Shown piece by piece: positions 408 through 64,000 of a stretch of 64,000 bases of DNA; positions within the stretch are counted from its first letter, which is position 1; each line of letters begins with the position of its first letter. The DNA lies in assembly GCA_964035545.1 (NCBI GenBank), contig OZ037765.1, forward strand, positions 20,708,995-20,772,994. The letters run 5' to 3'. Position numbers and translations under genes: made by a program. This DNA is from Bugula neritina (lineage: Eukaryota; Animalia; Bryozoa). Under the pieces are notes generated by a model, which saw only the letters and a program-made list of their open reading frames with translations, did not search any database and was not told the origin of the DNA.

Positions 408-3400
408 CCTGTGATGACATCAGACAGACTTACGACGCTTCTGGAACAAATATGAGTGAAATAGCAAACATCGTTCCAGAAGTAAACCTTCTTAGTGGTA
501 ACCTACTCTGCCCCGTAGCAAAGCCATGGTTTTCCATACTGGTGTGTATCAGTGAAGAGCATCGCTGTGATGGGACAGAGGACTGCTTAGGTGGTGTTGA
601 TGAGTTGGATTGTGGCTGTAAGTGTATATTTTAGACTGCGATAACATACTGTAATGTCATCAAATCTTTCTGCAAAACTGGCTTGTTCATAATATTTTTA
701 CCAGTCGATCAGCAGAACTAGTCACTGTGTTTTCACATTTCACTTAACAAAAATAATGAGTATTATGCTTGTTTGTTTCAATATTTTAATTAACTGATTT
801 TGATTTAGTCTGTTTTAAAATTACAACTAAAAGCCAGTAAAATACTTTTAAATTGAAAAACTTTTACCTTTTCAAGCATTTTCTTCTGTTGGTACATCTT
901 ACAAATTCAAACTGACCTTGCAAAAGGTTTTGACGTTGATAATGTTATGATTTATTTGCAAAGTGTGTAGCAGATTTGTAAATCTATATTATCTCAATGT
1001 TATGTTGGTTAGCCTATTGCGTTAATTTAGATGATGCATGGTGTTCCCATGAGCCTGTCCCAAACTATATCTGGCAAGAACCAGACGCCTGGACCTCTGC
1101 CAGACTGTATCCCTTTGGCGAAGAAGCTGGAGATGCAGATATGCTAAGCGGGCCTGATGACTGGGAGAAATTCTCATTATGTAAAAAAATAAGGATGAAT
1201 GGCAACATAGGAGTTCAGTTTTTTAATGCCAGATATTATTATATATATGTAAGTACAGACAGACAGATTTTGTCAGTTGTGAAAGCTTCCATTCATTTAG
1301 TTTCTTTTGTTTCGAGAGTTGTCTTCCGTAGATGAAGTTTTTGAGTGGTAAAATCATTAATTTTATTAGGAATTTTTAGTCACAATAGTTGCTTCAACTG
1401 AGAGGGGCAAAATGTACTTTTCACTTTTATATGAAATATTGTACCCAAAAATATTTTAGTAACATTTGATGTCCATTCATGCTTATCCAACGACACAGTC
1501 AACACCAATGTTGGAAGAAGTAGTTCTATATATTTTAAATTGTATATGTTTTATTGTCAAGGTAATGTTATGAACAAAGACATCTCCAACCTTTCATTTT
1601 TTCATTATTTTTTAATCTAATCGCTGGACAGAATTTTGAAGCATAAATATACACATTTTAGCATTCAAAGTGTAGCAGTTTGTTTTACCGCAAATTTTTG
1701 ATTTGAATATGTTATTGTTTACAGGTATGCGGTAATGGTTTACTAACCTTCAACAACGGTTATCGATCACACTATCCAGTCAAGTTTGAGGCAGACTCAT
1801 GGTATGACGATACTCCAATCATTGCCCCTTTCTGGGGTGAAGTTAGCGAGTTTCATACTCGTCTGGTAGAAGATGTGTTTCCGGGACTGCGCGCGAAAGC
1901 ATTCTATCATGAGTATGTGAAGTCCGTTGCCATGAGTGATAACACTACAGCAGTGTTGCAGAGGGCTACCTTGGACGTCGCAAATTCAGGCAAGTATAGA
2001 TGTGTTGAAGTTACAATTAGTGTCAGCTGTGCGTTGCTCACAAACCAACTTGCGTGTGTTGCTAAGTCACCGAGTCAAGTTGTGGTAGTTCTTCAAAAAA
2101 TTTGTGTTGTGATTTTCATTAGGTTAGTTATACTTGTTGCAAGTATTATAGCATTGTTGCTATACAAGCTTTCTGAGAAAAATCTATGAATAGTTCTCAG
2201 TTAAATAGCTGCTGTTTCATGTACATATAATATACTGATTCACTCTCTCTGTACTACTTTCAGTAATTAACATGTTCTGTGCACAACAAAACTTATTCCT
2301 CATAATCCTACAATGCTAGCACTGGTTTTTTTGTTTTCTCATGCAATTTTCTTCATTTCGTGGTAATGCAAAACTTTTTTCAATTCTGGTATGCATTCAT
2401 ATTTTAGAAGTTGGTGTTGACGGGTTTGAAGCTACATATGTGCTGGTTGTCACTTGGGTAAATATGGCACCATATAGTCATTGTGATTGGGTAGCATGGC
2501 GTGAGATAATGGAGGAGGCCTATGGATATGACTATGAATATGCTGAAGAAGAAGAAAGGGACCACTGTGTAGAACGAGCTACAACTGTTGCAGTGAGTCC
2601 AACAATATTTTGGTAAAACTTAAATATTTTTTGGCGTTGACCGACATTAGATTAGAAGTTGTTTCAATTTTAGATATGCTATCTTTTACAATAACATAAA
2701 GTAACAAGTATTTAAAGTTTTATGGCTTTCTATGGAGGTAGATTCTTATGGAACTCCAAAGAGAAAATGCTAACTGCAGCCTGATTTGTTGGAATAGCAT
2801 ATATTTGTTTATAGCTACTTGATTATAAATTTGTATTTAGTTGAACCACTTCCAAGCGGTGCTCATCTCAGATGGTGTTTACTCATTTGTGAAGTTTAAT
2901 TACCCAGAAGGTGGAATCAACTGGCCAGTACCAGGTTAGCAGCACTAGACTATACTCCTGGGACATGTAAATTGTGCCTTCAAATATTACATTCTTATAC
3001 TCGGTATTTTCGTAATAGATTAGTTATTCATTTGGCTTTAATGATCCTCAGTGATTTTTCTCTTTTTTTTTATAAAACAATGCTAATTTTAAAAATAAGT
3101 TAAAAATACACATTCATAGCTGAAAACAGCGTCATATCACTCCGGGCTATTTCTCACTGTAGAGATATCCTCTTGCATGCCCGATGATCAGATAGCTGCC
3201 ATACTGGGAGCAATAAATGGACCGCTGTCTAATGTAGCTGTAGCTGGCATCAACTCTGGTGATGTCTTACAAGGGGCTTTTCACTCTACTACCAAATATG
3301 TAAACGCCAGTGCCACTCTTGGTATAATGGACGTGGACTACTCGCCTGGCAACATGATATGTGAGTAGAGATTATTAGTTTGGTGAAAACATACTTTGGT

Positions 3401-6400
3401 AAATGCAAGCCTTATTTGATTTATCCGATGTTTCAAAGTGCATTTAGCACTTTCTGATTAAAGTACAATAGCTTGTATTATTTATCCAGTGTGGCGATAT
3501 TATGTTCTACAAAAGCAAAAAAGGTGTAGATATGGCAATGTACTTACTTTACTGTATCACTAGTTTCTTACATCTAATTTTATAGCTGAAGCAAAGGGCG
3601 AATGGCTGTTCAGGGTTGAGGAATCCTCGGGGCTAGCTGATGCGAGGGTGCAGTGTAGTCAGTTTGTTAACAGACAGAACCCAGCTCTCTATAGGGAGTA
3701 CAATACGCTCCAACATTGTCCTCAAAATCTCTTCCAGATGTGGTGGGACTGGGAGTGAGTTACATTCGTTACAATTGTGTCTACATCAATGTACATAAAC
3801 ATATGTACAGCTTTTTATTTACTAGCTCTTTTATGAGTGACACTTACTACAACGTGTAAATACATTTATAGTTTGTAGCTGCACTGTTTGAGCAAATTCA
3901 CATGGTCCAATATTAATTTTCTTTATGTTTCAGCTACACTTGGTATGGAGGATTTGATTGGATTGAATGTTACATTAGTACGTTTCCAGTCCTGGATATA
4001 GATACTGGCCTTCCTATTGAAAACTTTATGAACCTTAGTCAACTTTGTTGCTACGATATGGACTGGAATAGTGATTCTTTTTCATCGATTATAACTGACT
4101 CGCCATTTGCTGGTCATGTGACTGTAAGTATTATGCACTGTTCATCGTTATCCATTGACCGGTGCTTTTTAAAAATATGTGTAATTCAAATGAAGATAAA
4201 AATGGCTGTGATATTAAAACAAAGTAGTTTGGTTGTACAATATAGTTTTACCTGTTATGTAATATGTTTTATGCATTTCAAACAGAATTTTACAAATTCC
4301 TATGACCAGGCATAACGTAAAGCATTTATCAAAAGCCATGATTATTCAAATTATTGGTTTGAAAATTACTAGTTCTTAAAAAAGCATATTGAAGCTGTGA
4401 AGCTGATTGTGATTAGACACTGCAAGTTAGAAGTTTATAAGTTTACTGCTCTGTTTGAATATTTCTCACAGGATTTGACAGACGAAGAAGACGATGGCTT
4501 TATCAAGTGCTGTGTGGAGGCACAGGATAATGCTTTGTGTAACTCTTTTTACGACGTGCGTCCTAACAATAACGGCTCCTTCTATGATGCACCTGCTCGC
4601 CGTGAGTTATTTCAGCTACTTTACTTGTGTTTTTAACATATTGGTAAAAACAGCACCACATATTTCTTCAATGCTGGATAACTATATCGGTATTTGATAA
4701 ATGAATTTTGTTCTAACTATTTTAGAGCCATGGTTTGGAGATCCTCATATTGTGACATCCGATGGAGTTAGTTATACATTCAATGGTCTTGGAGAGTATT
4801 TGTTCACTGAAATTGGAAGCCGTGTTATAATACAAGCCAGAACTGAAAGGGTTGTCCTAGATAGTGGCGGTAAAGTTGATTTTAATTGGACAGTTACTTA
4901 TCTAACTACTTTTACATTTCAGTTTACTTTTCAGATTTATATGATTGTACTCCTGCCTTGGTAGAATGTAGCGTTGAACTTTTGAAGCATTACTCTTTAC
5001 TTTTGGTGATGTAGAGCTCGGTCAAGCCACGTACTTCAGCGCCATATGTGTGAAGAGTGATTCCTTACCAAGAGTGCAAGTTCAGATCAACAAGAATGCT
5101 GACACCAATGCTGTCGGGGTAGACAATCTGATGCAGATGGTTATTGATGGAACAGAAATGGACATCAGTTTGATAGAGCAAGATAAGAACACCACCCAGG
5201 CGCTTGATGGTGTAAATAATGGAATACTGTTTAAACGCTCCAACAGTAGCTTGACTGTGCTTTTTTCTTCTGGCGTATCTATCGATGTCTCCCCTAGCAA
5301 TGTAAGTGTACAGTTGCAGCTTGCCCTATTTTTGTTAATTCACCTGTGATAAACTTAACATAATGCACAATTTAAATTTGGTGAACATTATGCAGTTTCT
5401 GTAGGATTATGATAGATAAACTTTTTTGTGCACAGAACATGTTAGATAGTAGAGTAGTACAGTTTCTACATCAAACATTAGCTATTTAACTGAAAGCTTT
5501 ACATAGCTTTTTCTCTGAAAGCTTGTATAGCAACAATGCTATAATATAGCAGTTTCTTAATGTATCTCTGCACTTTGTTATGTGGCCAAGCCAAGCTGCT
5601 TCATCTTGAAATATAATTCTCAACACACATAAATTGTGCTAATTTGTGTCTAGTTTAACATTATCTGTTGCAGAAAATCCTCACTATCACACTCAGTTTA
5701 CCCTCCAAGTTTAAAGGCAAGACTCTCGGTTTGACTGGTAAGTATGATGGTGACAAGGAGAATGATTTCATGAAGTATGATGAGAGCGGCTACATACCCA
5801 ACAACTCTTCCGAATCAGAAATCTTTGACTGGGCTCAAATGTGTGAGTATTTTGCTTCTCAGGCAATCCCATTATTTCATAGTTGTTTTGTAGAATCATT
5901 TGATGATGAGTTCATGAAAATTAGTGTTGCTAAAGGTGTGAAGTAAATTGTTAACTATTAAAAAAATGTTTTTGTATCTTTCTGAAGCTTTTAGTCAGCA
6001 CTGTAATATATTGAATAACCACTCTCTTTTTATTAATGTTGCTATTCTTTTTTCTTAAAGTTGCTGTGTCTGAAGAGGATTCTATCATGTATTATACTGA
6101 AGCTGGAACTGACTGGTCAACTTATAATGACAACTCATTTGTACCCGTGTTTACTGATAACATTGACAACTGGGCGTGGTCTTCTGAGGAGTTGAAGACA
6201 GAAGCACTCAAGACCTGCAGCAATGACACCGCTTGTCTTTATGACGTCTTTATAACCGGAGATATCAACCTTGGCAAGGTCACTAAGCAGACTGTAGATG
6301 ATAGTGTTGCTGTGAGCGCAGCTTTGAGTAAGTACTTTGATTTTATTGAGTTGGTTTTGGAGAGGTCAAGAGTGCTGTTAGTCACTTGCTAGAGGTGAAT

Positions 6401-9400
6401 TATCTCTGGTTTTTTTTCTTCGAGCACACTGTGTATGTATTCTAGGATAGCAGTAAATTATAACGGATGGCTTAAAATTCTATGCCGAGAAGATGACTTA
6501 CCAACTTTATTTTTCATCAGTCTTTTGAGTTTGCTTATGCATGGAAACTCTGTGTATACATATATTCTAATATAGCAGTAGATTGTAACTTATGGCTTAA
6601 AATTCTACTCAGGGAATATAACATATTATTGTTGTTTTATGCCAGTTTTTCAGTTTTACTTATAAGTGAAAACTACTTCAAGTTTATGGCTATTCATCAG
6701 TTTATACTGCTAAACTTTACATCATTGTTTAGATGTCTCAATAGTAGTTGTGCTTTCTTGATAGATAACTTTGCTCCACAAATATCTGGGCCTGATACCG
6801 TGTTCTCTACTGTTGGTGTGGACTTCACTTATGTAGTCAGTGTGAATGACTCAAACGGAGATGACGTGACTGTCACAACCAGCATACCATCTTCTCAGTC
6901 TACTGATGGCCATTTGGTCACTTTAACAGCTCAGCTTGATTCTTCTAGTAACTTTACTAACCTAAAGTTCACTGTCATAGCAAAGGCAAGTAATGTGTAT
7001 TTGGTTACGAATGCCTGCTCTATGATCCTTTTTTTTTCGTTACACAAGAAAGATTTTGTTTAAACTCATGGGGAGGTCATTTTATTTCGAATGATTTGCT
7101 TTTTTCATTAGCATGGAATTTAGCTTAAATTCTAATGATTTAAAACAGGATCCTAGTGGGGCGGCAAACACCAAGACTCCCGTATTGATGATCTGTAATT
7201 GCCAAAATGGAGGAACATGCCTCGAACTTTCTGCTGAGGAACTGGAATTTGCAAGTTCTTTGTGAGTTTAGATTTATCAAATTCTCATTCTTTGGCTGAA
7301 TCTAGCAGTTTGCTTTATGTAGTCATTTTTACGTACATAAATCTTTGTATTTATATCAGTGATTTGCAGTAAGTTGTGTACATTTAAAAATAACATTTTC
7401 ATTGCACAACTTTTAATACTACGAAAGAAATTTAATTTTTAAATATCTGCAGGTTTGGTGCTAATATCAATGGTTATATTCATGATGAGTAGTTTTACTA
7501 TTAATGGAAGTGGTTTGACATTTACAGCTCTGTGGTACTGGATTGTATCTGTCCAGCTGGATATACAGGAGATACTTGTGATACAGATTTAGATGCATGT
7601 TCTCTGGTAGCTTCCCCCTGTTATCCATCAGTCCTGTGTGTAGATAGTCCACCACCAGCTGATCACACTGGATACACGTAAGTCTATGTTGATACAATAT
7701 CTGTAGGTTTCTCTTTTATCTTTATGTATCTCTAAACATCTACTAAATATTCATACTCCTTACAGATGTGGAGATTGTCCACCTGGATACACAGGAGATG
7801 GTAAAACATGCACAGATATAGATGAATGTGAAGATGAAAGTAGTTGTGGTCACATCTGTATCAACTCTCCAGGATCATATGTCTGTGCCTGCAATAGTGG
7901 GTATGAACTTGACGAAGATGGATCTACTTGCAATGGTAAGTGATTAGATGCACACCCTTTTTTTCCAGCATAAATAAAAACTTAGGTTCATTGAATTTAA
8001 GAATATATTTGGCATTTGACAAAAAAGTTTAACTTTTGTGGTCTGAATAAAGCATGGTACAAACGAAGTGAATGTAGAATAAAAACATTAAGAAAACCTT
8101 CTGGTTTAAATAAACTTATACCATATTTGTTGGCCAACCCTAAAAATTTGTCCTGTTGCAATTATTGTTCTCCATACTTTTTTCTGTTTCTGAAATCGGT
8201 TATAGAGTAAGAGATAGTTTTTTTAAATTTTTATTTTTCCCATGTCATCTACACAGGGTTGTAGCTCTTTGTTGTGTAGGACAATGAAAAAGGTATCTAC
8301 TAGCCACTATCGCCATAGCATATGTTTCTTTTAGATGTTGACGAGTGTCTGGCTGATCCATGCCATCATAACTGCACCAACTCTGATGGTACCTACTCAT
8401 GTTCCTGTAATGATGGGTATACACTGAGTAGCAATCAGCTTGACTGTGAACGTAAGTTTTTATTGACAAGAGCCTTTTGATAATCAATTTTTAGCTGTTT
8501 AGTTGTTTATACCGCAATGTTTTACTTGAACTTTGTCCAACTATTTGAAGACATAATTTTTTTGCTGATCATGAGCTTATTGTTTTATTGTATTCATTTT
8601 TTGAGTTTTATGGTAATATTTTGCCAATTAACGGCAAAAAATAAAATTGCTCTCAATGGCAGACTTTTACAGCATATGATAGCTCACCAGAGTAAAGTTT
8701 CTCTGTTTTTGAGTACTAAGTTATTGCGTTGTTTACCCGAATTTTATTTGAAGAAATAATTTATGTCTAATGTTACTATCTCATGTGCAACTGTAAAATT
8801 ATTTCTGATTCAAAACATTTTAAGCTTATAATTTGTTTGAAAGTCGCTTTCAAACTCTAGTTTATGTTGATGAAGTATTTGTAACCAGTTCATTCTGACT
8901 AAATGAATGTGTTATCATACTGGAATGCAATTCACCATCAAATTAATGTTAAGGTTTCCAAATGAAAATTGTTATCAACATTGGTTCGGCACCAGTAGCA
9001 ATGAACACATATTTGCAATCTTGCCCATTTGACATTTTAGCTGAAAATCCATGCTCTGAGCCCAGCCCTTGCGATAGTACAAATGGTTTGTGCAGCTCTG
9101 TTGATGGCTCAGAGGTTTGCTCTTGTAAGAAGGGCTACACTCTGGCTGGTGATGATGTATCTTGTGTGGAGATAGACGAGTGCCTCCTTGGCATTGATGG
9201 CTGCCAGCATAACTGCGTGAATGAAGTCGGAGGTTACTCCTGCACCTGTAATGATGGCTACAGTCTTGCTTCTAATGCCTTGGACTGCGAAGGTGAGCCT
9301 GTGATATCACTCTATGTCTCTTTGGATCACTATGGTTTTTCATATTTTTTATTTATAACATATTTAACACAAAGTAAGTATAATAATAGTACCTTGATAT

Positions 9401-12400
9401 TCCATCAGTTTTACATATTTTATTTTATCATTATTTTATCACTGTGATAACAAATCAGTTTGTGAAAATGCAATCTATCAATACTTTTTGTAAGACTATT
9501 TTTAATTATTCTGTAAATTTTGCCATTTTTATTCTTTGTTTTTGATTATACCTTGTAGAGTGGTTTTTTCTCAACTTGTTTCTTTCTCATTCAATTAATA
9601 ACCCACGTGTTGTGTCTATAGTCTCGTTTCATGTGTACAGGATGAGATAGGTTTAGTCTCAAAAAGTCTCCATATGAGTAGGTTTGCCCTACTTAGTGAT
9701 CACAGAAATATAGCCATCACAGTGTTATTTTTAGATAAGAATGAATGCATTCTGGACACTTATGATTGCCATGAATCCCAGTCTTGCTCCAACACGGAGG
9801 GCTCATATGATTGCGTCTGCTTAGCTGGCCAAGAATTCAAAGACGGACAATGTCAAGGTGAAAATGCTTCAGATATTCTTACTTTGTTGACAATACACAA
9901 CACTGCATTCTGTGAATACAAAATCATGTATAATTTATATAGTGACTTCAGTAGTGGACTTTCACTGTTTTGCTGTTGCTACAGTTTTTATTCTTGTCAA
10001 TGAAGTATCAATATTAGTCACTTTAAAGTTCAGTACTAACCTAAATAGTTATTGAGTACGAAATTTTGGAGTTGTTTGCTTTTACAGCTGTTGTTTACAC
10101 TGACCCCGTGAGTCCTATAACTAGTGACCCGGTCCCAGAGGCTGAAGTTAATGCTATTAAGATGTCTTTGGATGGAATGACTATTGCTGAGGTAAAAATT
10201 TTCATGTTCCATTTTATAATGGTTTAGAAAACTATTTTTTATACTCTACATGGGATGTTAAACATTCAGCATTATTTAGCAGGAAATGCATTAGATATGT
10301 AAACCTATTGTTGGTGGTAAATATCAATTCTCTATTTAAAATGTTCATAGCTTTTTATTTACCGCACAACAGACCAAATAAAGCACTATTTTGCTTAAGA
10401 ACATTTGATCTACTCATAGTTTTATTAGTAAAATACAAAAAATGTTATAGTGAACACTGAACAGTATATGTCCTTTTCATTCATTCAGTTGTAACATACT
10501 GTGCTTATTTCAGTATACTCTTGAAAAAGAGGTTCAACTATTCACCCTGTTAGCTGAAGAACTAAGTGATAGATGTGCCCAGCAAACGTGTGGATTTGAG
10601 AGTGTGGCATCAGAAGCCAGCAGAAGAAGGTATGTGATTGTGTGATTGCTGTACTACTGCATATAACAGTTATTTTAATAGGCCAGAGATTGCAGCTTGT
10701 TATGGCTCAGTAACCAATGAGCTTATGGATACCATTGTTGAAGAAGACAAACACAAAGTATTTTACGCAATATGTGTTGAGTCACACTGTTTACTATACT
10801 ACTCTGCTGTGTGCTGCATTACGTCTTGTTGTGGTATGGTAACCTAGCTACAGTATACTTTTCTTTTGTACTATTTGTGTTGTCTAAATTATTTTGAAGA
10901 ACATCTCTTATCAGCAACTGGAGCATATTCTCATTTTTTGGGAAGTTAAATCTTTTTGCAAATTTCAAGCTTTCATTTCTTTTCATCTAAAGGAAGGACA
11001 TGCATACCATTTAACATTTGCTAGACACACACCATTATTTCAATGAATATATAAATCTATAGCAACAAACAGTTTGCTGCAGGCACTAGCTTAGTAAAGG
11101 GTTCTAGACTGGAAAAATAAAAAATTGAATAAAAATGTTTATAGAAAAAACAACTTCCCTGAATTGTCTAAAATGCCCTACTTTACAGCTGTGCCTAATT
11201 GCTAGGGTTTTTTGTGTTATAGCATTAGCCTAGAAAGCATGTCTTCTGTGAGTAGGTCATTACTCATATGTTGGGGATTTCAACTGTACTAAGACATATA
11301 TAACTGTATAATGGTGAATGTCAAATAACCTATTTCACCTGTTATGCTTATTTTATATTAATAATGCTGCATATTATTATGTAATATTACATTTGAGAAA
11401 AGTTTATCAACAAATCCTCCAGCACTTAGCTGTAGATGCAGGAAATATTGGTGTCAACTTGTAGCATGTAACTCTGTTTTAATAGAAATAAATGCCCTTG
11501 AATATACTTGTTTCTTTTTTAATTTTAATATTTTATATTTAGTTGTGGAAATTTAAAGTTTACCTTAGATTTCAATGGTGGTGATATATAGCAATAGCAA
11601 TATATTGTTTCCAGTGATGTATCATTGTAATTGCAATTTATAGGAAGAGGTCCACATCCGTCACATTCTACAAGGAGTATTTTTCAAGACTCCCAGGCTA
11701 TCCTCAGTATGATGAGAATAACAACCTGCAGCTAGCCATATACTCTCTCGTCACGGGCAAAGGGGTGCTCGCTGTAGATGATCTGCAAGCTGCTATAACA
11801 TCAGCTACGTCTGAAATCAGCTCTGCTATAGGTATTTCTTACTCATTCTCACAAAGTCTCTTGGAATATTTGAACTAATTTTTTGTTTGAGTTGTTTAGT
11901 AACGTTTTCACAAAATAACGACTGGTGATGACTTAGGAAGCAATAGAAAGCAGATATGCTTTTATTTTACTGATATAATTACAGATTTTGTTTATCAAAG
12001 TGTTGTTTCTTAGAGTTACATAGTGAGTGACTGAGAGAGTTAGTGAGTGAGTAGATAGTGAGTGAGTAGATAGTGAGTGAGTAGATAGCATAGTTAGCAC
12101 TATTCGATAATCGATAGACGATGAAACTGCTGTAAGGTTGAATGTACTGCAGGTCATTTATTTGTCAGCAATATTTGTACATGATCACACACTATGAAGC
12201 TAGTATAGTGTGTGTTGTGTTGCAGGGTTCCCGGTCATTGACATCACTGTAGCCTTTGTACCAACAACTACCACGACCACAGAGTCTGAGAGTACTACAA
12301 TTGTAGACCCTAAGTCTGGAAATCAGTCCGTCATATACATCGCTGTTGGGGCATCAGCTGGAGTTGTGCTCCTTGTAATTGTAGTTGCTGTTCTTATCAT

Positions 12401-15559: not shown

Positions 15560-15601
15560 ATGTATATATATACATACATACATACATATACGTACATATA
15601 C

Positions 15602-15693
<92 letters not shown>

Positions 15694-15708
15694 GTATATA
15701 TATACGTG

Positions 15709-15745
<37 letters not shown>
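15560..15745. repeat. (TA)n microsatellite
   Basis: Direct observation. Confidence 0.95.
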
Positions 15746-15748
<3 letters not shown>

Positions 15749-16131
15749 TTATGCGCATATGCACGTACATATTAACACACTATTTATACATTGTAGGCCT
15801 ATAAGTAAAAAGGTTCTTTTATTATAAAACATATTTGCAAATTTTTTAGTTTGAAAAGTTTTTGAAAATTATTTGTCTCAAATAATCCTGTTATAATTTG
15901 AGGAGTCAATCTATTTTATGCTATATTTAATGTTTTCTGTGTAAATTATTTATCTGGTGGAGGGAAGGAATTCATATAGATCTTACTGAATATTACATAA
16001 GAGTTGTTAGTTTCTGCTGACTGACAAAAGCAATTCTAGCTATTTAAGTAGATTTTTCTCAGTGAGAAGTAATCCCTTAGAATCACTTACAAAATTAGAA
16101 TTCAATTAGAACTATTATATATCCACTAGTC

Positions 16132-18298: not shown

Positions 18299-21200
18299 AT
18301 GGTCTACACTCGACTGGTTTTGCTGCTGATTATTTCTGCCAACATACAGACCGTTCTTTCTCGTGAGTATAACTAAATTTAATTTTTAAAAGCCAGCTTT
18401 TATATATTACTTTCATATAAAGATAAATTAGTCTGCTGTAAATGTTATTATAGATTCACATTTTAATAAAGCACAAACTAAATAATTTTTGATTTGTGAT
18501 TTTTATTTTAAACATTTTAAAGTGAACTAAACTTAAAAAGCAGCAAACCAGAGAGTGGGTCTCTAATAATATACACTGTACATTGACACAAAATTTATAA
18601 GTGATTGCGCAATTAATCTTAAAAGTTAGGAATCTCAGAATAAATGTTTCTACATCAAAATACTTTCAGCATTCAACTCTAGAAATTTTGATTTCATTTA
18701 GATTTTATTTTTGTTTTAGAGGATGGCAGCAGTACCCCAAGGGAGTCAGGTAAAGTATTTACAAATAGTAGAAACTCCTGATAGTCAATAGTAATAAAGT
18801 AGGTTTAGTGTAGCCTAACATTTTTACCACTTCAAATGTTTTTATACACATTTTGAACAGTTCGAAGGTTTTCAGTGTACAGCAAAGTAAAAGTGTGTGA
18901 CATGCCATAGACTTTAGAGCTATAAGTTGCCTATAAATCAAGTTGTTGGCATGGTTTAGATATTTGAGTAAAAATAGTTATATAATAATAATATACGGAC
19001 TCCCACTATTTCATTCTTTCTGTATATTATACTTGCAGTGTATATTCTAGTTCATAATACATTTTGTTATGTACTATAATGCGTTGCAATTTATTTTACA
19101 ATACATCATATTATTTATTATAATATGTTGCAATATTGTATTATCATACATCTTATTATGTAGTATAATAGATATTTCTATCTCTTAAAATACTTGCCAC
19201 AGTTTGTCAAAACATATAAATATTGAGTTTTAATAATAGATGTACATTCTATGTAATATAATGCTTATAACAACGTAGTACCATATTATGCATTACAAAA
19301 TTTTATAAACATATTGTTCATAGAATATATTTGGCTTAAGTGTGAGGTTTGCAATCTTTGAATAAATAACTAGCAAAAGTGTTTTTCTAAAGAAAAGGAA
19401 CTCTACTGGTTTCTGCACATATTATAGTCATAACAAATACTTTTTTAAAAAGTTTCAAGTAACTTTTTAGACTTTACCTTGGATTAAATGTTACATGTAA
19501 CATATATATGCTGACATGTAGGTACATGACATATGCTTCTAGAACTCACTGTGTTGTGCTTTTAATTGTAGATGACTCAACAGGCTCTACCGATGAACCA
19601 GGTAATGGCACATAACTTGTTTCTAACCTTGGAACTAGTAGCAGCTAGTAGGCTTATGATATTGCTTTTATAGCAGTTTACCAATATATCATAAACTCAT
19701 GAAATTTATTCTTTTTAAAATTTATCTTGAGATAGCTTGAACTCACCTTAATTATAATACTGTTTTTAATATTTTTATAATATTTGATATTATCAATTAT
19801 AAATTGTTTTATAAAGTATTTGGTACTTCGAGTGTTTGACTGTTGAAAACCAAAAAGAGTCATTGAAACAATTAATCTTCCTGCGAGTAATTAAATCTTC
19901 AAAGTAGGAAATTAAGTAAAGGTGATATTGTTGATTTTGTTTAAATGCATATAAAGTATCAGCAAATACTTTGTTTAAAACTTTATTTAAGCAGATATTA
20001 AGTTTTCAACTTGGATATACATTTCATATACTTACAATAATATGTGTGTTTATTTATTTTACAGATGAGCGAGTTACAGCTGGTACTACAGAGACCTACA
20101 CAGGAGTTGCAGGTAACTGTTAAACTTGAAATATAATTTTCTATATTCTAATTACACATGAGTTATGCTTGCTATTTGTTACATCATATCAAAATTCTAA
20201 AGCTATAAGCAGCAATGTAACACAGATAGCTATTTTTGTGTATCGCTATTTTCAATCTGCAATGACTTGGTTTTGACATTTCTTGTCCCTCAACAACTTA
20301 ACATTATTAGATTGTCAACAGAGCAAATTAAACTATATAATGTATACACATAATAGAAACTAGCACTATATTTTGTTAATGTACAATTCGTAGACTTTGA
20401 TCTTCTGAGCGCTGGAAACCTGTATCCTGCGGGCTCTACTAACCTTTTGGACAGCTACTCCAACTCTGATGTCCGGTTCTCTAAGATCTGTGCTACCTAC
20501 AAGCGCTATGTTGAGCCTCTGCCATACTTCAATCTGGATCAGCCACGCCATCTGTCTGTAAGCACTAGCTTTGCATAGGCCTATCTAAGTCAGCAAATTA
20601 CATAACTATAATATGTGAATAAGAGTGTAAGCAAGTATTATTTGAATTTTAGGTTTTTACTACAACTTTAGTTATGTATGTAAAATTGTATCAAAGAATA
20701 GTTTTGACAATTTAATGGAAATCAGCTCTATAGTGATATGTTATTTAAAATTAGGGAGCTGCCTTTGCTATTGTAATTATACTAGCTATGAATGATGCTA
20801 ACAAAATAATGTATTGTGCAGCTATATGCTATGAATGTAAATCATTTTTATAGTCTTTATAAGATTTTTATCAAATGAAATAATTTCTTTAAAGGTGTGT
20901 AATAATGGAATGATGATTTTTGCTAATCAACCATTGGTTGAAAACCATCCACGGTTACTAAACACAGTTCCAGCCTTCAAAACCAAAGGCATTATGGCAC
21001 CGTTTTGGGGAAAGTCTAACGAAGCTACCATGTCTCAGCATTCTGATGCAAACAAGCGGACTCAGATCCTCGTAAATGACATAGAACGTGCTGCCATGTC
21101 GGACGATGTTCTTGAACTGGCCAAGCAAGATGCGGCAGAAGCAGGTAAGCCTACTGAAGAACTATTAAAATTATTATTTAAAAAATTATAAACTCAAACA

Positions 21201-24200
21201 ACAAACCACTATAATATAAAACTTGTATAAAATTAAATAATTTAACAAACTATCAATGTTATAATTTATACTCGGGTTAAAAAATTTAAGCATGAAATTA
21301 CATAATATTACGATGTTTTTGTTTGTAAGTAAGTTTGATTTTTTCATTAACTGCTAACACATATATATATATAAATTAGTCTTGGCTATATTATAGCCTT
21401 TTGTAATTTATTGTAGCCATTAATTGCTTAGTTATAAGATTAGAATATACTTTTATATATTTAATTTGTCAACTTTTTATAAATCAGCTTTAAATGATTT
21501 TCTAACAAGAGATATGAAACATGCATCACCATGCTCAATGTTTGAATGAAATTTTATAAAAAAAGATTAAAAAATGGTATCCTGCACAACATATTATGTA
21601 GACCTAGCACAAAGTCTTGTAGAAGAAATGAGGATGACACGAGTTGTACATGTGACATTATGCATGATAAAAGTTGTTATCATACCACCAGGTTAACTTC
21701 AACAGAACAGAGTTAATAATAAGCACACATTTCTTTAAATCTGTTGTCTTTTGACCAATTCAGGTGGTAATGAAGATTTTGTTCCAAAATGGATGCTAGT
21801 GGCCACCTGGGTAAGACTACCATACGATGATTTACAATGCCGAGAGAAATCTCTGAGTCATTTCAAGAACCCAACTGCCGAGTCTGAGGTCGAACATCAA
21901 GATTGTGTGGAGCTTTATGAAAACCTGCCGGTATTTCTCATAGCTATTCATATCTATATATAATTTATAATACATAATTGGTATTTATAGCTGTAGTTGT
22001 GAACATGTGACTATAGATTTGTTAGTTTTTAATTTTCAGAGAACTTTTGGCTACTTTGAAGAAGTGTTACAATATTGATCTTAGAAGTTTTGTTTATTAT
22101 TGCAGACAAACACTTTTCAAGCAGTGTATATGACTGATGGAAGCTACGCCTATGTTAAGTTTATTTACCCTGAAGGAGGCATTTCGTGGGTGTACCCGGG
22201 TAACTTCTCGCTAAAATAATTATATAACATCGTAAAAGATGATGTCAAGAAAATTTACCAGATTTTATTTTACGTGCGTTGTACTTGTAGCGAAATTGAT
22301 TAGTTGATCTTGTATTTTCAGGTATTGCTTATAGCAACATTGACAGTTGGCAATCCTACTTGAGCAGTTTCAATGGCGATCTGGATGATTTTGCTGTTGG
22401 AGGATTGATTTCAGGAGATGACGATGAAGTTAACGAATTAACTGAAGTCATCAGTTTATCCAACAGTGGCAGCTTTCATTTCTTGACTGTTGACGAAGCT
22501 CCTGGAAATTATGAAGGTAAAAGTGAAACCTTTTGCATTACTAGAATATTATGAACTTTAGCATTGATTAGCTTAAAACAAGATGTTATATAATCAAAGT
22601 TATACAGGAAAGCGTGAGGTGATTTTAAATAAATGAATAATCTAGTAGAACAATAACTGAATGCTTACAAAATAGTATGTTGACTCGGTAGAATATATTT
22701 TGATCTACGCAGGCTCTGAAATTAATTATTTTAAGTAATTTATTTTTTATTGATTTTGGCAAACAGTTTCCATTTAGATTTTGTCTAGAAGACGTTGACC
22801 AAAACATAAAAAGAAGTTTTCAATAAAAGTTTTAGCAGAACTTAATTGCACTTCGAAATATTGCAAAGATAATATATATATGTATCATTTTAGATGAAAG
22901 AATAGGTGAATACGTATACCGTGTGGATTTGTTTGATGGTACAGTAACTGCCGAGACTCAATGTGATAACTGGGTGAACGAACAAGATCTTTCACTAGTT
23001 GAGCTTTTCAATGCACTGAACCCCTGCCCAACAAATGTGCGCAGTGCATCAAGAGACTGGAGGTGACAGAAATATGAAATTTGTAAAATTATACTTTTAG
23101 CATACTATCGTAGCTTAAAGCCCAAAACATTCTTATCGCATAGTGTTGAGTTTCCTCAGTAGCCCTTATAAGGTAATGAGTAGCACCCTAGCTTGCAAGT
23201 TGCCAGATGTGGAGTTTAATTTCTGATGGCGGCAGAAGCTTTTACACATTCATCGTTTTTTAACAATTGGGTTTTACGTACTTAATATAAGAGTTTGATA
23301 AGTTAATTAAAATTTATTTGTCAACAAAAAGTGAAAGTGCTATACAAAAGTGTTCATTTCTTTATTTATCGCTGTGTGGTACCCAGTTTATGGCTTTTCT
23401 AGTTGTTATAGTGTTAATAACTTGATGAGAACCTTCCAGCTATGCTAGGAGTTTTATCTTGAATCAAATTCTGTGGAACTAGCCATCAACACTAGATAAA
23501 GTTGAAATTTTCTTAAATTATAGATTTGTATGGGCCTCAACTCAACCAGACTGCTATGAAAGTAGAATTTCCAGAGCTGGTTTCAAGCAGAGATGCTGTT
23601 ATAGCACAAAACAAGAAAGCTTGGGCTCACTAATAAAAGTTTTGCCAGATGCTGGTTTTGTAAAATATGAGGTAAGTATAGGCTACAAAGCCAAATGTTT
23701 TAAACTTCATTTTTGTGAACTGCCTTTACACATGTATTGAAAAGAATCCCAGCTGCATATGCACATGTACCTCTGTCAGTAAACTAACTAAAGCTACATA
23801 TTTTATAGCACAATCAAGTTTCTAAATGTTATGATATATTTGATTACCCAAATTGCAAATCTTTGATGTTTTAGTCTGCTGATAATGATGACGACGCTGG
23901 CTATAAATTGTGTTGTACTGGCTCAGTTCAGCTGTGCAAGTTGTTCCACATAGCGAGACCTATAAACACTGGAGAAGGATATCTTCCTATAGCAACTGGT
24001 CAGCATTTGCTCACCATAATCACTGCATGAAATTTACTCCAGAAACAGTTAATATCTAAAAAAGAATCTAATTTATATAGCATTGTTTGAAATTTTTCTC
24101 TAGGTCACTTGAAAGAAATTGTTTTGTAGGACCGGCATTTGGTGACCCTCACTTTTTAACCTCTGATGGTGTTAAGTACACATTCAACGGCCTTGGAGAA

Positions 24201-27200
24201 TATCTATTTACCAAGATCGGTTCGGACAGCCAAATACAAGTTAGAACTGAAAGAGTTGCTAGCAGCAATGGGGGTATGAAAACAGTCTTACAGGAAATTA
24301 CAAATAAATCTTTTCAACCTTCGATGAAGCTTAATTTAATAATGCTATCACATTTTAAATCAGAAATTTTAAAAGCAACAACTGATTTCTTTTGTTTAGA
24401 TTGACATTGTTTAAACTAATCAACAGTATATCATTATGTGCAAATTGCTACTAAACTATTGTACCACTACTTTAAGTTTGGTTGATATTTTGATTTTTGT
24501 TGTTAAAGAGTTGCAACTACTTTTCATAGAAATAAGCCATGTGTTGCAGAAGAGAGTGATGCAACCTACTTCAGTGCCATATGCGTGAGCATCTCAGGGC
24601 GACCCAGAGTTCAAGTTCAGGTCAACAAAACAGCTGCTGCCAATACTGTGGGTGTAGAAAATCAACTGCAACTAATTGTTAACGGAATTGAAGAAGACAT
24701 TGGGTTGTTAACTGAAAGTACCGACACTACTGAGAGCATTGACGGAGTAGATAGCACAATACAGTTTCAGAGAACACCAGATGACAGCCTAATAGTGTAC
24801 TGGGAAGAAGGCGTCTCTGTCACTGTATGGACATCTCAGGTATTTCAATCAGATATAAATTTGTAGGACGACTTGCATTTAAATACTAGTGGCTTATACA
24901 CTTTGCTGACTACACCACACACACTATATACACATGATGCAGACACACACGCACACACACACGCACACGCACGCACACACACCCACTACTCTGCACACAC
25001 TATATACCCTTTATGTATACTTTATGTAAAGTAATTATACAATATACACTACTTTTTCAATAATTGAGAGAATGTTTAGCTTGAAACTATTTTGCTATTT
25101 TATCTTTTAGCAAATGATGGCTTTGACACTAGGGCTGTCAAGCAGTTTGATTGGAGAAACTATTGGTCTAACTGGGGTGTATGATAGAAATGTCAGCAAT
25201 GAGTTTACATTCTTGAATGGAACCATCTCAGAATTGACTACCAATTCGTCTGACAAAGACATATTTGATTGGGCAAGCACATGTAAGTTAGAAAAGCTGT
25301 TTTATTCTAAGTTAAATTTCAGGTGTAAACTGTCATTCTATATTTACAATGTACATGGCTTACTTTAAATATAAATAAGACTATATATTGTGCTAATTAA
25401 TGGTAATTGGAAGCATAAATTGAAGCATATAATCTCTATATTATTGGCCAAACGTTGAAAGTTTATGATTATTTCAAAAAGTAATTCAGTTTTGAAAAAC
25501 TATTAAGAATTGTTTAATTTGAATGCAAACTACTATTTATAAATCATGAATATCAAAATTTTTTATTATACGTCTTGGATAATTGTAAATTAATGGTAAT
25601 AATAATTCTAACAATATAAATAATTCAAGTTCGATTCAGCATATGAGACATATGCAAAATATTTATGTCACTATATTTGATTTGGTCATTTATAAACAAT
25701 ATTATGCAAAGTGCCTTGTTTCGTAACAATTGAAGCAAATAACATAACTTTTCTGGTTTGCATTAAACTGAGATTTTGATAGAAGCTTTCAGCTACAACA
25801 TCTAACAGTTGAGTATTGATTATATTTATAATTTTATGCAGTTGCTGTATCTGAAGAGGATTCTATCATGTATTATACTGAAGATGGAACTGACTGGTCA
25901 ACTTATAATAATAATTCATTTGTACCCGTGTTTACTGATGACATCGATAGCTGGGTGTGGCCTTCAACAGACCTTAAAAATCAAGCTTTTGAAGCATGTG
26001 GAAACAACTCAGCTTGTTTATACGACATTTATATTACTGGAGACGTTGATGCTGGTACTTCTGCAAAACAAATTGAAGAAGAAAGTGAAGAGACAAACAG
26101 AATACTGAGTAAGGAAATCTATACCTGAAATGTACTTTCAAAAAATTATCTTAAATAAATGAATAATTTTTCTTGTATTTTTCTTTTATATGCTTGTATT
26201 TTTCACTACCTAGTCGTAGTGTGGTGATGTACAAATAGCCCCTGTAATGTGTAATGGTTAGCGTGTCAGGTTGAAAGTTAGAGTCCTTGGACTCGAATCC
26301 TGAATTAAGAGGAAAAAATTATTATATTCTAAAATGTTGGTAGATAACTTCTCACCTGTCATATCTGGACAAAGTGCAACCATGGCAAATGTAGGAGAGA
26401 CTGTCACTCTAGCGTTCAGTATAACAGATCCAAATAATGATGAAATAAAAGTTTCTACAAATTTAGACACAGCCGTAATAACTAATGTAGAAGATCTCTA
26501 TCTTTTTGAATTCACCATGCCAGACACAACAGCTTTCACTTTCACTATAATTGCTGAGGTATGCATTATCAAACTCAGTTTCAACCATTGAACAAATATC
26601 GAACTTAATTTTGTTTGTCAATCCTAGGCTTACCAATACCAGTTCAGATATTTAGATAAACGTTCAAATACCCTCTTTAAACTCCTAGCAGTTTAAATTT
26701 TATGTAAAATTACCGAATTTAGGATACAGATGGAGCTGTAGCTACTGAAACACCAACTCTTATGATTTGCCAATGCGTGAACAATGCAACTTGTGAAGAA
26801 TTATCAGAGATAGAGCTGGACTTAGTTCAAACTAGGTGAGCCTATTGTTGTTGTGTTGAACTTTCTATCTCAATATCTAAGATCTAAATGAATGGACTGA
26901 ATGAACAACTAAACTACTTCAAGCTACTCCAAAGACTGTTGAGCTATTGAACTTGCATGAAATATTGTCTTGTTTATTTACAACTTGTCAGAAAATAGAT
27001 ATGGCTGCTATTGCAGCAATAGCAAAATAAAGCAAGGAAAAGACCATTATGTATCAGAGTTGAGGTCAATTACATGTGAATGTGATTAATTACAATTACA
27101 ATTACATGGTAATGTAATTAATTACAATAACAATTACTTTTGTTTTCACAAGAGAAAAATAGAAGTTATATAATCTCACTGCTGGGGTCCAACTACCATG

Positions 27201-30200
27201 GGCAATTTTGACAATGGACAACCTTCTTTGTTCTCAACAGTAACACATGGGGTGAAAAATACGATGTTAAATTAATCTGAACTTTTTATTAAACAATAGG
27301 AAGGACAGGAAAAAGATGAATTTTATAAGGTTTAAACAATTGAAGTAATTGTTATGTAATTATAAAGTAATTGTAAAATTTAATTACATCAGCAATGTAA
27401 TTTATTACAATTACAATTACAATTACATTTTTATACACCAATTGCAAATTACATTCAATTACTTGACAAAATATAATTAATGGCAATCAATTACAATTAC
27501 AAATTACAATTACCCCAACTCTGTTATATACACAAAAAGTAGCTAAAGGAGAAAGTTCTTTAAATACAAAGTAAAACATAGAAAGCTGCTGTAATGAAAG
27601 AAAGGTTGTAAATGCATAATGTAACAATTTGAAGCAGTGTTTCAACTATCTATGTTTCAATGTTTTACTACTCCTTTAAAACTCATATACTTTCTGAATA
27701 TTTTACTTTAATTAACTTTGGTTAGGCATAAAACAATACAATTAAAAAATCTTGCTACGATGTAGCTACATAAACTTGCATCAATGAAATCTCATTCTAG
27801 ACTTCATTTATTTGTATATTTTACAGCTCTGTGGTACTGGATTGCATCTGTCCCACTGGATATACAGGAGATACGTGCGAATCAGATATAGATGCCTGTT
27901 CTTTAGTTGCCTTCCCATGTTACCCATCACTGCCCTGCATAGACAGCCCAGCCCCAGCTGATGAGTTCACCTACACGTAAGAAAATTCCCTTCACAACTG
28001 CTTGCCTATTGTCATTGTGATTTCTAAGTTGAATATTTTTTCTCATCTGAAATTAATACACTATTTTTTGCAGATGTGGAGATTGTTCAGAGGGGTACAC
28101 AGGAGATGGTAAATCATGTACAGACATAGATGAATGTCAGGATGAAAGCCTCTGTAGTGGTATCTGCATCAACTATCCTGGTTCATACGCTTGTACCTGT
28201 GAAAGTGGCTACCAGCTAAACGATGATGGAAAAACATGTGACGGTAAATACGTTTACATGTGATTATTACAAAGTTTTGCAACCAGATTTTGTGATAAAA
28301 GTAAAATCATTGTTCTTTTAACAAAGTTACTACCAAATGCATCATAAGTAAACAATACTGCACGGTGATGTTTTCTAGACATTGATGAGTGCATTACCCA
28401 GCCATGCCACCATTCCTGCACCAACACTGCTGGTTCCTTCAACTGTAGCTGTGATGTAGGCTATTCTCTTAATGAAGATGGAATCAACTGTGATTGTGAG
28501 TTTATGGCTTTTACTATCACTTATCTCCACTTACAGATGTCTATTAAGTACAGTAGTAAATTAAAGTAGTATATTTTTAGCTATATTCTATACATGCATT
28601 GCTATAATATTTTCTAAAAGTTTTATTAACCCCAAGCATTTCTATAGTAACTGTTGCTACTACTTACAACTTTGCAGTAAGTTTATAAATATAAATTGCT
28701 AATAACATGTCCAATATAGAGCTAAAACATAGTTTATCTCAAGCATTTGTAATGAAATTGAAAATATTTGTTACAAAAAGCCATGTAAAACATAGCTCAC
28801 TATGTTATTGCTTTCAGCTGCTGATCCATGCACAGATTCAAACAGCTGTGATACTGACAATGGCTTGTGTTCCAAAGTAAATGGAACAGAAGTGTGTTCA
28901 TGTGTCAAAGGCTACACTCTGAATGATGATGGAGAAACATGTGATGAGACTGATGAGTGTGCTCTGGAAACAGACGCATGCGAAAGTGGTTGCAAGAACA
29001 CAGATGGTGGATATCAGTGCACTTGTAGCTCAGGATATGTGCTGTCTTCTGACGGCCGCAGCTGTCAAGGTCAGTAGTGAGTAAATGTCATCCATAGAAA
29101 TGGCCTTTTTTTGCTTATGAAGGATGCTTGTATTAGTTTAAAAATATGGTTCACAAACATTTTGTGGTACAAATTTTTAAATTAATTTGTTGCATTGCTA
29201 AGCTTTTCATGGTGTTTTTCATATACTGTACATGCTCATGGGCACAAATAGTATATGAAACTATTGCAGGATTACTTTTCAAACTTAAAAAAAATTTTTA
29301 TTCAAGCAAATTTTTAATTTCACTTGAGTTTGGTGATTTTAGTTTTTGATATTTGACTATAATATATGAGAGAGTAAAAAATTATGTTGAAGTTTATGAT
29401 GAAAAAATAGGAACAGAAGTAGTAGTTATTAACCGAGTGTTTTTCATGTCTTCAGATATCAATGAGTGTGTAGACATCAACACCCAGTGCCCGGAAACGA
29501 AGACTTGCTCAAATATCCCTGCTTCCTACGAATGTGTCTGTAACCCAACCCAAGTCGAATCAGATGGCAAATGCATAAGTATGTTTCAAATTATCGCAGT
29601 CAAAAGTCACCTTAATTTCTAAGTATTGAAGCGTTATTTTTTTCTAAATAGTAGAATTTGTGGTTTGGGATGACAGTGACATTCATGTTGTTGTGATAAT
29701 ATATTTTTCAAACCATTAACATAGGATTACAAAGAATTTCATTTTTGTATGCTGCAGCAATATAATGTTGAGCTTCAAATTGAGGTTGTAGAATATCTAC
29801 CTACACTGAGCAAGGCTGCCTTTTGTCTATAATATATTATGTGCGTGTGTGCATATGTGTGCGTACTCGCGTAGGTGTGTGCGTGTGCGCGTGTATGTGG
29901 GTGCGTGTGTGTGCGCGCGAGTGGCTGCTACTGAAATATGGTGTGAATGGTTTGGCTTTATTTTGACCTATTCAAGCACATAATGTGTTTTACCTAATAT
30001 TACAGCCGTGAACCCTGGTGACCCAGTGGAGGAAATAACTACTGAACCTTCCAAAGCAGCTCTGAAAAACGGAGTAAAAATTGATTTTAAGGATATGAAA
30101 CTTGATGAGGTATGTGTAATGTATAAAGAGTATAGAGTGTTACACTACGCTATCGCTGACCCTCTTACCTCAATAGATTCCTCTGTAGTGCTATTCCTAT

Positions 30201-31972
30201 ATATGTGCAGTTTGTATAGTCTATTTGTACAATTTAAAAGTCAGTGAGCAAGCTTTACTTTTTGTTAACCAAGTTTAGTTCTACTCTAGTATGGCCTTAA
30301 AAAAGCTGTATGTGTTTGAAGATAGACTCTAAAATAATTCACTGTTGCAGTATACTTATGAAAAAGAAGAACTGCTCTTTGCAAACTTGGCCAAGTTTAG
30401 CAACGAACATTGTGAAGCGAATGACTGTGGCTTTATATCTGAAGAGTCTTCAAGAAAGTAAGTATATACAAACTTGCATTACGTATTAAACTTATGAATA
30501 TACTTATATGGCCTACAATATATCAAGCAAACAGATCTAAAAACATTTATAACGTTTTTCATATTACCATCAATTTTTCTTTTCTCATTTCGTTTTCTTT
30601 TTCTTATACAGTTCATCAAACAGTAAATTAGCTTGTAAGAAATTGCAAAGTTTATTACTATGCAAAATATTTTTAGGAAAAGAAATGATGTAACGTTTAC
30701 AGTAGCAGACTTCTACAGAATCAAGGGCTCTCCCTCATTTGATGATGGCAACACACAAGCCGCAATATATGCCTCAAGCTCTGAATTTGGCATTCTTTCT
30801 GCAAATGACCTGTTGACTGTGATAACTAATGCCCAGAGCTCCATAGAAAGTGATTTAGGTCAGTTAAGTTGCAGCTTTAATTAGTAACTTCTATAGCATC
30901 CCTCAGATTTCATTTTCACCTGATTAGAGTCAGATAAAGCAATTTTCTGGTGAATGAGTAAATAAGCTTATAGATTTATTTAATTTAGGTTATAAGTAAC
31001 TATGATTGGAAAATTTTTCATTTTGTGTGAAAAAATATCTCGGTTGCTTTTTTAATAAAACCAATTGAAAACTGCTTTTGATGACCTAACATGCTTGGAA
31101 ATGCTTAGGTACTTATACATGTTTGTAACTGAGTAAAGTACTTCTTTTGGTCAGGCTATGTTATGGACTCAATTGAGCGTGTCACTGCGCTAACTACAAC
31201 AGTAGCCCCAGCAACAACGCTTGTGGATGAAGAAGTTTCAGAAACTCCAAAATCTAAAACTGGAGTTTACGTTGCTATTGGTGTGAGCGTTGGATTGCTC
31301 GTGGTAGTCATTGTAGTGGTGCTTGTTTGTCTGAAGATAAAAATGAAGTAAGTCTGACATTTTGGTTTAAACATAATATAGATATGTAGTGTTGAATTTA
31401 CCCAGTGGTCCCTGTGGTGCAATGAGTAGCACCCCTGCTTACAAGCCGGAGGTTTCGGGTTCAAATCCCAATGGGGGCATGAAAGTTTTATTACTGCATT
31501 TTCAATATTATGTTATAGTTGTATTTAAAATATTGATATATTAGTAAGTAATAGAACAACCAAATTGCTACTATAAAATATATAAGCATAGTTTAATAAT
31601 TAGAATAGCTAATTGATTAATATGACTAGGTATTAGGATTAATTATTTGTCTGTTATAGCAAATCATCTAAAACAGCTCCTGGTGGTGCAGAAGAATCTG
31701 CTCACAAGAATGAAGTAGTAGCAACATCAATGACACAGCGTGATCCTGAGCAGTTTCATATGGTTGAAACAGGAAGCGCCAAACCAGGAAGTGCCAAACC
31801 AGGAAGCGCCAGACCAGAAAGCGCTAAACCAGGAGGTGCCAAACCAGGAAGTGCCAGACCAGGAAGCGGTGTGCGTGTTTCTGAAGAAAGGCCGGGAAGT
31901 GGAAGTAAACAGACTCAAGACCATAGCAGAGCCGCCACTCCTACTGTAGTGCACCCAGCTCCAGTAGAATAG
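18299..31972 (+). CDS. Gene B: paralogous MUC4/SUSD2-like type-I membrane protein (signal peptide-NIDO-AMOP-vWD-EGF array-SEA-like-TM), complete, 28 coding exons
   Basis: Exons: 18299-18362 ([21 protein letters not shown] signal peptide), 18720-18749, 19572-19601, 20065-20112, 20394-20557, 20895-21144, 21764-21930, 22106-22199, 22322-22516, 22894-23062, 23524-23671, 23875-23998, 24130-24273, 24550-24839, 25111-25282, 25842-26108, 26344-26558, 26723-26835, 27827-27976, 28074-28243, 28379-28495, 28818-29069, 29456-29578, 30006-30109, 30351-30457, 30677-30858, 31155-31347, 31660-31972. All introns are GT-AG and, from the NIDO region on, match gene A in position and phase. Motifs: [53 protein letters not shown]. 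Confidence 0.9.
23141..23234 (+). repeat. tRNA-like short interspersed repeat copy (degenerate)
   Basis: Shares the leader TAGTGTTGAGTTT..CAGT and AATGAGTAGCACCC..GCTTGCAAG with the 31387 and 33882 copies. Confidence 0.6.
26236..26312 (+). repeat. Highly degenerate tRNA-like/SINE head
   Basis: GCCCCTGT..GTGTAATGGTTAGC and B-box-like GGACTCGAATCC. Confidence 0.4.
27055..27523. mobile_element. MITE, probably hAT-type, in an intron of gene B
   Basis: TIR CAGAGTTGAGGT../..ACCCCAACTCTG; arrays of AATTAC/GTAATT subterminal repeats; flanks TTATGTAT / TTATATAC resemble a decayed 8-bp TSD. Confidence 0.75.
31387..31479 (+). repeat. tRNA-like short interspersed repeat (best-preserved copy)
   Basis: A-box-like TGGTGCAATGAG, B-box GGTTCAAATCC, pairing ends GTCCCTG/TGGGGGC; intronic; homologous copies at 23141 and 33882. 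Confidence 0.7.
31772..31867 (+). repeat. Coding 15-bp tandem repeat (GSA[K/R]P x6) in the cytoplasmic tail of gene B
   Basis: GGAAG(C/T)GCCA(A/G)ACCA units, translated [32 protein letters not shown]. Confidence 0.9.

Positions 31973-37628: not shown

Positions 37629-37630
<2 letters not shown>

Positions 37631-37688
<58 letters not shown>
37631..37688. repeat. (TA)n microsatellite, left flank of the Penelope element
   Basis: Direct observation. Confidence 0.95.
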
Positions 37689-37690
<2 letters not shown>

Positions 37691-37769
37691 TTACGAGCTA
37701 GCAATTTAATTATAAATAGGTATACGAGAAACATTGTTGATTTATTACTTTATTATAGGTAAAATAATT

Positions 37770-37811
37770 CTACTAATATTTCGGGTACCACTGTACCCAT
37801 CTTCAGAGTAG
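37770..37811 (-). ncRNA. Minimal hammerhead ribozyme motif in the 3' pLTR (element sense strand)
   Basis: Reverse complement of 39268-39309, followed by AATAAA signals on the element strand. Confidence 0.75.

Positions 37812-39364: not shown

Positions 39365-39468
<104 letters not shown>

Positions 39469-40685: not shown

Positions 40686-64000
<23,315 letters not shown>

Follow-up and report, generated by a model that had tools for sequence, protein, structure and literature searches.

Recurrent gene conversion very probably homogenizes an intron-containing EGF block across putative mucin-4-like genes of Bugula neritina

Introduction

Interlocus (ectopic) gene conversion and concerted evolution have been described in mammalian gene pairs (PMC2720389), in Caenorhabditis paralogs (PMC3966223), in Drosophila duplicates (PMC3924832), and in the GOT1 paralogs of Tigriopus (PMC3728101). 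In these cases, the homogeneous tracts are short and discrete, and silent sites and introns are homogenized within them. Paralogs are more similar to each other than to their orthologs, the effect is stronger in linked copies, and individual genes are mosaics of tracts with differing partners. The locus described here has these same properties and does not differ from the known cases in kind. Three of its aspects stand out. A stretch of about 320 bp is common to 9 to 10 old paralogs on three contigs, rather than to a pair. The stretch ends within exons. Finally, it persists in two sister lineages, in genes whose remaining parts have 36 to 72% protein identity.

The bryozoan Bugula neritina is a species complex with three or more cryptic members (PMC11480708). 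An initial annotation of 64,000 nt of B. neritina DNA (the window) had proposed that two inverted paralogs, A and C, are connected by a recent gene-conversion tract that spans an entire intron. Here we describe this tract in the window, in the rest of the genome, and in a sister lineage.

Results

A putative mucin-4-like gene family in the window

The window is AT-rich eukaryotic DNA (GC of about 0.27 to 0.40) with short GT..AG introns. Self-comparison and exon-wise tblastn identified three paralogous multi-exon genes, A, B, and C (Table 1). Outside the block described below, A and C share 36 to 72% protein identity per exon by tblastn, and there they are old paralogs. Pfam searches with single exons found a MUC4-type C8-3 domain in one exon (46 bits; cut-off, 25). 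The NIDO match (23.5; cut-off, 25) and the VWD match (21.7; cut-off, 22.9) were both slightly below threshold on single exons, as is expected for domains that are split across exons. The family is probably mucin-4/SUSD2-like, with NIDO, VWD, MUC4-type C8, and EGF repeats, an architecture that is partly established from single exons. The likeness to mucin-4/SUSD2-type proteins lies in the MUC4-like C8-3 exon and in cEGF and EGF_CA exons above the cut-offs. However, those proteins have a NIDO-AMOP-VWD arrangement, and no AMOP domain was seen in the ten Bugula exons scanned one by one with Pfam. The B. neritina family also differs in being a lineage-specific expansion of at least 10 copies.

The window contains other repeats as well. 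A tandem array at 46967-47739 adjoins the 3' end of gene C; its shifted self-alignments are 79 to 92% identical, and its GC skew is strong (0.35). Either a repetitive exon of mucin-like type or a satellite could account for it. A 500-nt inverted repeat (37630-38129 and 38951-39448; 97% identity) has arms about 820 nt apart and simple-repeat arrays at its flanks. These simple repeats recur at 15559-15750, 49559-49904, and 63655-63790. The inverted repeat may be a foldback-type element.

A nearly identical block in genes A and C

We compared A 7557-7876 with the reverse complement of C 51637-51318 without gaps, pairing each A position p with C position 59194-p. There were 6 mismatches in 320 nt and zero gaps, and the mismatches fall at A positions 7615, 7633, 7743, 7758, 7821, and 7851. 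Two of them are in the enclosed 88-nt intron (A 7678-7765, GT..AG). These counts reproduce those of the initial annotation exactly. Both ends of the tract lie inside exons of gene A. The block begins about 29 nt into exon 7528-7677 (exon 1) and stops near 7876, within exon 7766-7935 (exon 2). Between these limits the two proteins are 96% identical. In the exon edges just outside, A and C differ at 5 of 29 positions (7528-7556) and at 16 of 59 (7877-7935), or jointly at 21 of 88 (about 24%). It had also been noted that the neighboring introns of A and C and the corresponding intron of gene B could not be aligned. This was borne out: the introns that flank the A/C block reach about 50% identity in a forced alignment, which amounts to unalignable sequence, and the 72%-identical gene B segment contains indels and an unalignable intron.

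At the exon-edge mismatch rate of 0.24, a 320-nt stretch would have at most 6 mismatches with a probability of 2e-29, and the contrast between core and exon edges is significant by Fisher's test (p = 1e-10). At synonymous sites, the A-C difference (pS) amounts to 0.057 within the core, compared with 0.45 and 0.60 where these exons extend beyond it. Neutral sites of the core (pS of 0.057; intron, 0.023) are homogenized as much as replacement sites. Because pS is so much lower in the core than at the edges, selection at the protein level is excluded as the cause, a point that the initial annotation had argued from the intron.

Table 1. Positions of genes A, B, and C and of the block features in the window
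Feature	Position	Strand	Evidence
Gene A, approximate extent	1063..11863	+	Exon-wise tblastn vs B and C; Pfam exon by exon
Gene B, approximate extent	20889..30893	+	Exon-wise tblastn
Gene C, approximate extent	47841..60558	-	Exon-wise tblastn
High-identity block, gene A	7557..7876	+	6/320 vs C; 88-98% to 8 other genomic copies over 419-nt segment
Gene A exon, 5' part of block, EGF-like	7528..7677	+	AG acceptor 7526-7527, GT donor 7678-7679, open frame, weak EGF matches
88-nt intron, wholly within block	7678..7765	+	GT..AG; in-frame stop right after donor if unspliced
Gene A exon, 3' part of block, calcium-binding EGF	7766..7935	+	Pfam matches over cut-off: cEGF, EGF_CA, FXa_inhibition
Block in gene C, inverted paralog	51318..51637	-	Ungapped match to A 7557-7876
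88-nt intron, gene C copy	51429..51516	-	2/88 vs A; 1-3/88 vs D, F, I, E, G
Equivalent segment in gene B, un-homogenized	27820..28230	+	72% to A, 70% to C, indels; intron unalignable

Copies of the block across the genome

A 419-nt segment matched the genome of the window (G000; 216,009,554 bases) at 11 places. These are A, C, and further paralogs that we labeled D, E, F, G, and I, together with H on contig C5, J on contig C6 (split in two), and B at 72% identity. Seven of the block copies (A, C, D, E, F, G, and I) are clustered within 300 kb of contig C1, and H and J are on two other contigs. The block and its intron are thus present in at least nine paralogs of the NIDO/VWD/MUC4-C8/EGF type, with 88 to 98% identity over 419 nt. 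The cores of C, D, E, F, G, H, and I are 91 to 98% identical to that of A, and the flanking introns fail to align. Among the nine copies, the exon-1 core (121 nt) has no differences between C, F, E, and G and 1 to 5 in the other pairs. The 88-nt intron has 1 to 9 differences, and the exon-2 core has 0 to 12, except in copy I, where there are 19 to 23.

The full genes provide the background for these numbers. C, F, and J can be aligned through their introns at 76 to 87%, E and G align at 93%, and G and H align at about 70 to 80%. Between A, B, D, or I and the other genes, only exons can be aligned (70 to 86%). The divergence of the block is at most that of the youngest whole-gene duplicates in the family.

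The near-identity of A and C could be the outcome of a single recent conversion directly between them. The two differ at only 6 of 320 positions and lie 44 kb apart, inverted, on one contig, and nearby intrachromosomal paralogs are the commonest kind of conversion partners. However, E (6 differences) and F (7) are just as near to A, and C has equally near copies in F (5), E (6), and G (7). Most sites that separate A from C are private to one of them. Among the nine copies, the states at 7615, 7633, and 7758 are private to A and that at 7821 is private to C; the state at 7851 is private to C within the window's genome. At 7743, A shares its state with E and I. Because the differences are mostly private and A is as close to E and F as to C, no direct exchange between A and C can be deduced. 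Each gene is merely near the family consensus, and any copy in the cluster is therefore a possible donor. We consider a single A-C event unlikely, and the proposal of one tract between these two genes gives way to a block carried by at least nine.

Two copies have peculiarities of their own. In copy J, the 88-nt intron contains an insertion of about 8.1 kb (L019:1475-9605; contig C6, about 10705774-10713904). It is a Ty3/gypsy-type LTR retrotransposon whose open reading frames have aspartyl protease, reverse transcriptase, RNase H, and integrase domains, and its 300-nt LTRs are 98% identical. The element is missing from the sister-lineage ortholog of J (L027), so the insertion is young. In copy E (C1:20914600-20934599), the alignment with G, a close duplicate (93%), does not begin until about 200 nt upstream of the block, and E looks like a 5'-truncated duplicate.

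Orthologs in a sister lineage

We found relatives by word searches with the exon-2 translation and then with an A-specific exon. The exon-2 search brought up 'hypothetical protein EB796_006997 [Bugula neritina]' along with a number of JGI proteins, and the second search added others. Their contigs belong to a genome other than G000. The sister-lineage sequences are JGI contigs from two samples and an NCBI B. neritina draft, all of them short-read metagenome or draft assemblies. Orthologs were assigned to copies in the window's genome by intron matching. L028 and L039 are orthologs of I at 89 to 90% identity; in G000, only I matches over the full length, and the runner-up is a partial match at 78%. 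L027 is the ortholog of J (94.6%), L037 and L038 are orthologs of H (about 85%), and L036 is the ortholog of A (83 to 90% over more than 10 kb). A further copy, X (L029, L030, and NCBI contig L035), is without a full-length counterpart in G000 and served only as an extra paralog.

Substitution divergence between orthologs in the flanking introns is 8.6 to 10.2% for A, 7.9 to 9.3% for I, 9.3 to 17% for H, and 3.8% for J. In more distant introns it reaches about 21%. With 4 to 10% divergence in flanking introns and several cryptic species in the complex, the sister lineage is probably another cryptic species of B. neritina. Intron divergence between the lineages is uneven by locus, at about 4 to 5% at J (contig C6) versus 8 to 17% on C1 and C5. 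In the H ortholog L037 (about 11250-11290), exon 1 of the block lacks about 45 to 50 nt, equivalent to A positions of about 7546-7592. The loss is either genuine, in which case it might mark a pseudogene, or a mistake of the assembly.

In the A ortholog, a scaffold gap of 58 N (L036:11590-11647) falls exactly on the block core, so A was tested through its flanks. The gap is a failure of the short-read assembler on a multi-copy repeat. Such a gap at a multi-copy block raises the question of whether the near-identity in the window's genome is itself an artifact of assembly or polishing, produced by cross-copy read correction or collapse. However, every copy has its own substitutions and unique flanks. 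The block also lies in unique flanks in three independent sister-lineage assemblies (the two JGI samples and the NCBI draft), and the ortholog of copy I is identical in two samples. The window apparently stems from the B. neritina assembly of the Darwin Tree of Life (216.00 Mb), which was made with hifiasm from 132x PacBio HiFi data. HiFi reads are many times longer than 320 bp, and the paper on that assembly nowhere uses the word 'polish'. We give an artifact almost no credence.

Divergence of the block intron between orthologs and between paralogs

Between orthologs, the 88-nt intron differs at 9 of 88 positions in I (10.2%), 8 of 90 in H (8.9%), and 2 of 86 in J (2.3%). The introns that adjoin the block in the same orthologs differ by 7.9 to 9.3%, 9.3 to 17%, and 3.8%, respectively. 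The block intron therefore diverges between orthologs at the rate of its neighbors, and it is neutral and unconstrained. Within the window's genome, the intron of the seven cluster copies has a mean of 2.9 differences per 88 (range, 1 to 6). The mean is 5.9 between the cluster and H or J and 8.9 between the cluster and the sister-lineage copies. The four sister-lineage copies differ among themselves by a mean of 12.7 per 88 (range, 9 to 15); either homogenization is uneven between the lineages or the sister assemblies carry errors. For A and C, the intron divergence of 2.3% (3.5% with synonymous sites included) compares with about 9 to 10% in the flanks between A and its ortholog.

Copy I carries this comparison within a single gene. 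Its block intron is 1 to 2 sites from those of A, C, D, and F but 9 from that of its own ortholog. Its exon 2 has the opposite relationship, with 8 of 170 sites differing from the ortholog versus 36 to 40 from A, C, D, E, F, and G, and in the exon-2 tree copy I and its ortholog form a clade with 100/100 support. The exon-1 core and intron together are 4 to 6 sites from the cluster paralogs and 13 from the ortholog. Fisher's test of this contrast gave p = 2e-5 to 3e-4. The block tree is star-like, and an AU test on 209 columns with too few informative sites does not reject the clade of I and its ortholog (p = 0.13). Therefore, the greater closeness of paralogs than of orthologs is a matter of distances, not of topology.

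A neutral intron that is nearly identical among paralogs bears out the mechanism of the initial annotation, recent ectopic gene conversion; what is not supported is the specific pairing of A with C. The similarity would need no copying at all if purifying selection at the nucleotide level preserved a functional element, for example an RNA within the intron, a regulator of splicing, or an antisense transcript. The limits of the block are roughly alike in many copies, and the block is recognizable in the sister lineage, as such an element would predict. However, the ortholog introns evolve neutrally, and the intron is more variable than the core exons. The block of copy I also ends elsewhere than in other copies. 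Gene B lacks the intron sequence, and so does L040, a more distant relative whose C8 exon has 62% identity. L040 keeps exon 1 and both splice sites, and its intron at the block position is longer than 300 nt and has no similarity to the 88-nt intron. Equal conservation of the intron in other species, which the initial annotation had named as a refutation of conversion, was thus not found. An Rfam scan of the intron gave a best score of 17 bits versus a gathering score of 86 (E = 0.21), and folding against shuffled sequence revealed no stable fold (z-scores: intron, -0.53; block, +0.86). With no signal from Rfam or folding, we rejected an intronic functional RNA (snoRNA, miRNA, or other Rfam family). 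Purifying selection on a functional element of any of these kinds is highly improbable as the explanation.

Tract ends and other high-identity patches

The ends of the homogenized tract vary from copy to copy. Copy I is homogenized only from about 7557 to about 7800 in A coordinates, and it shares its diverged exon 2 with its ortholog. Copy F has flanking introns like those of C and J (78 to 88%), yet its block is like that of E and G over both entire exons (98%), with zero exonic differences from E. This switch from C/J-like flanks to an E/G-like block appears to support incongruence between tract and flanks. A and D have no differences at the 5' exon edge. The A exon edge 7877-7935 differs at about 4 of 59 positions from the sister-lineage ortholog L036 and at 16 of 59 from C, so this edge behaves as orthologous. 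Such variation is expected of repeated conversion and not of a fixed functional element.

Further short patches of high identity lie elsewhere in these genes. A and D are 96% identical over 124 nt (window 11628-11751), A and B are 91% identical over 126 nt (6059-6184 and 25840-25965), and B is 89% identical to C (28835-29013 and 49329-49151) and 93% identical to F. An exon of 195 nt is 94 to 96% alike across C, E, F, G, I, and J, and in the VWD region about 550 nt are 88 to 92% alike across C, D, G, I, and J. The entire gene family thus appears to be a conversion mosaic, made of short high-identity patches with differing partners.

Discussion

We conclude that a block of about 320 to 420 bp in at least 10 mucin-4/SUSD2-like genes is very probably under concerted evolution by recurrent gene conversion. 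The block comprises most of a putative EGF-like exon, the whole 88-nt intron, and two-thirds of the next, calcium-binding EGF exon. We suggest that non-reciprocal copying from paralog to paralog, that is, interlocus gene conversion in the course of repair or recombination, repeatedly overwrites the block. The seven members of the 300-kb cluster, in either orientation, would be reached most effectively by such copying, and those on the two other contigs less effectively. Being nearly identical, the block would stay a good substrate for more conversion, in the manner of a self-perpetuating 'island'. The diverged flanks, with their unalignable introns and exon edges that are about 25% diverged, would halt heteroduplex extension. 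Such a halt would account for the recurrence of tract ends at roughly similar positions. We infer this molecular mechanism, the self-perpetuating logic, and the timing of conversion relative to the lineage split. The locus is a clean, well-supported, and mechanistically ordinary example, and it calls for no new mechanism.

A different possibility is that the conversion island is kept by a recombination or repair hotspot, or by selection for an invariant pair of EGF modules. We regard this as distinctly improbable. If it were true, the same 320 bp would be kept identical across an old ten-member family, three chromosomes, and two lineages by something well beyond passive, identity-dependent conversion. 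Under selection, the EGF pair could serve as a shared surface for docking, with the remainder of these adhesion-type proteins left to diversify, an arrangement that might fit recognition among colonial animals such as this one.

For recurrent conversion itself, the embedded intron is an internal neutral marker, and together with the sister-lineage orthologs it separates conversion from constraint unusually cleanly. The intron is free to change between lineages, yet it is nearly identical among old paralogs of one genome. Short-read assemblies break at such conversion blocks. Trees and dS values from the mucin-4-like family, or from other families of this genome, would be misleading if such blocks were included, which is a warning to annotators and phylogeneticists.
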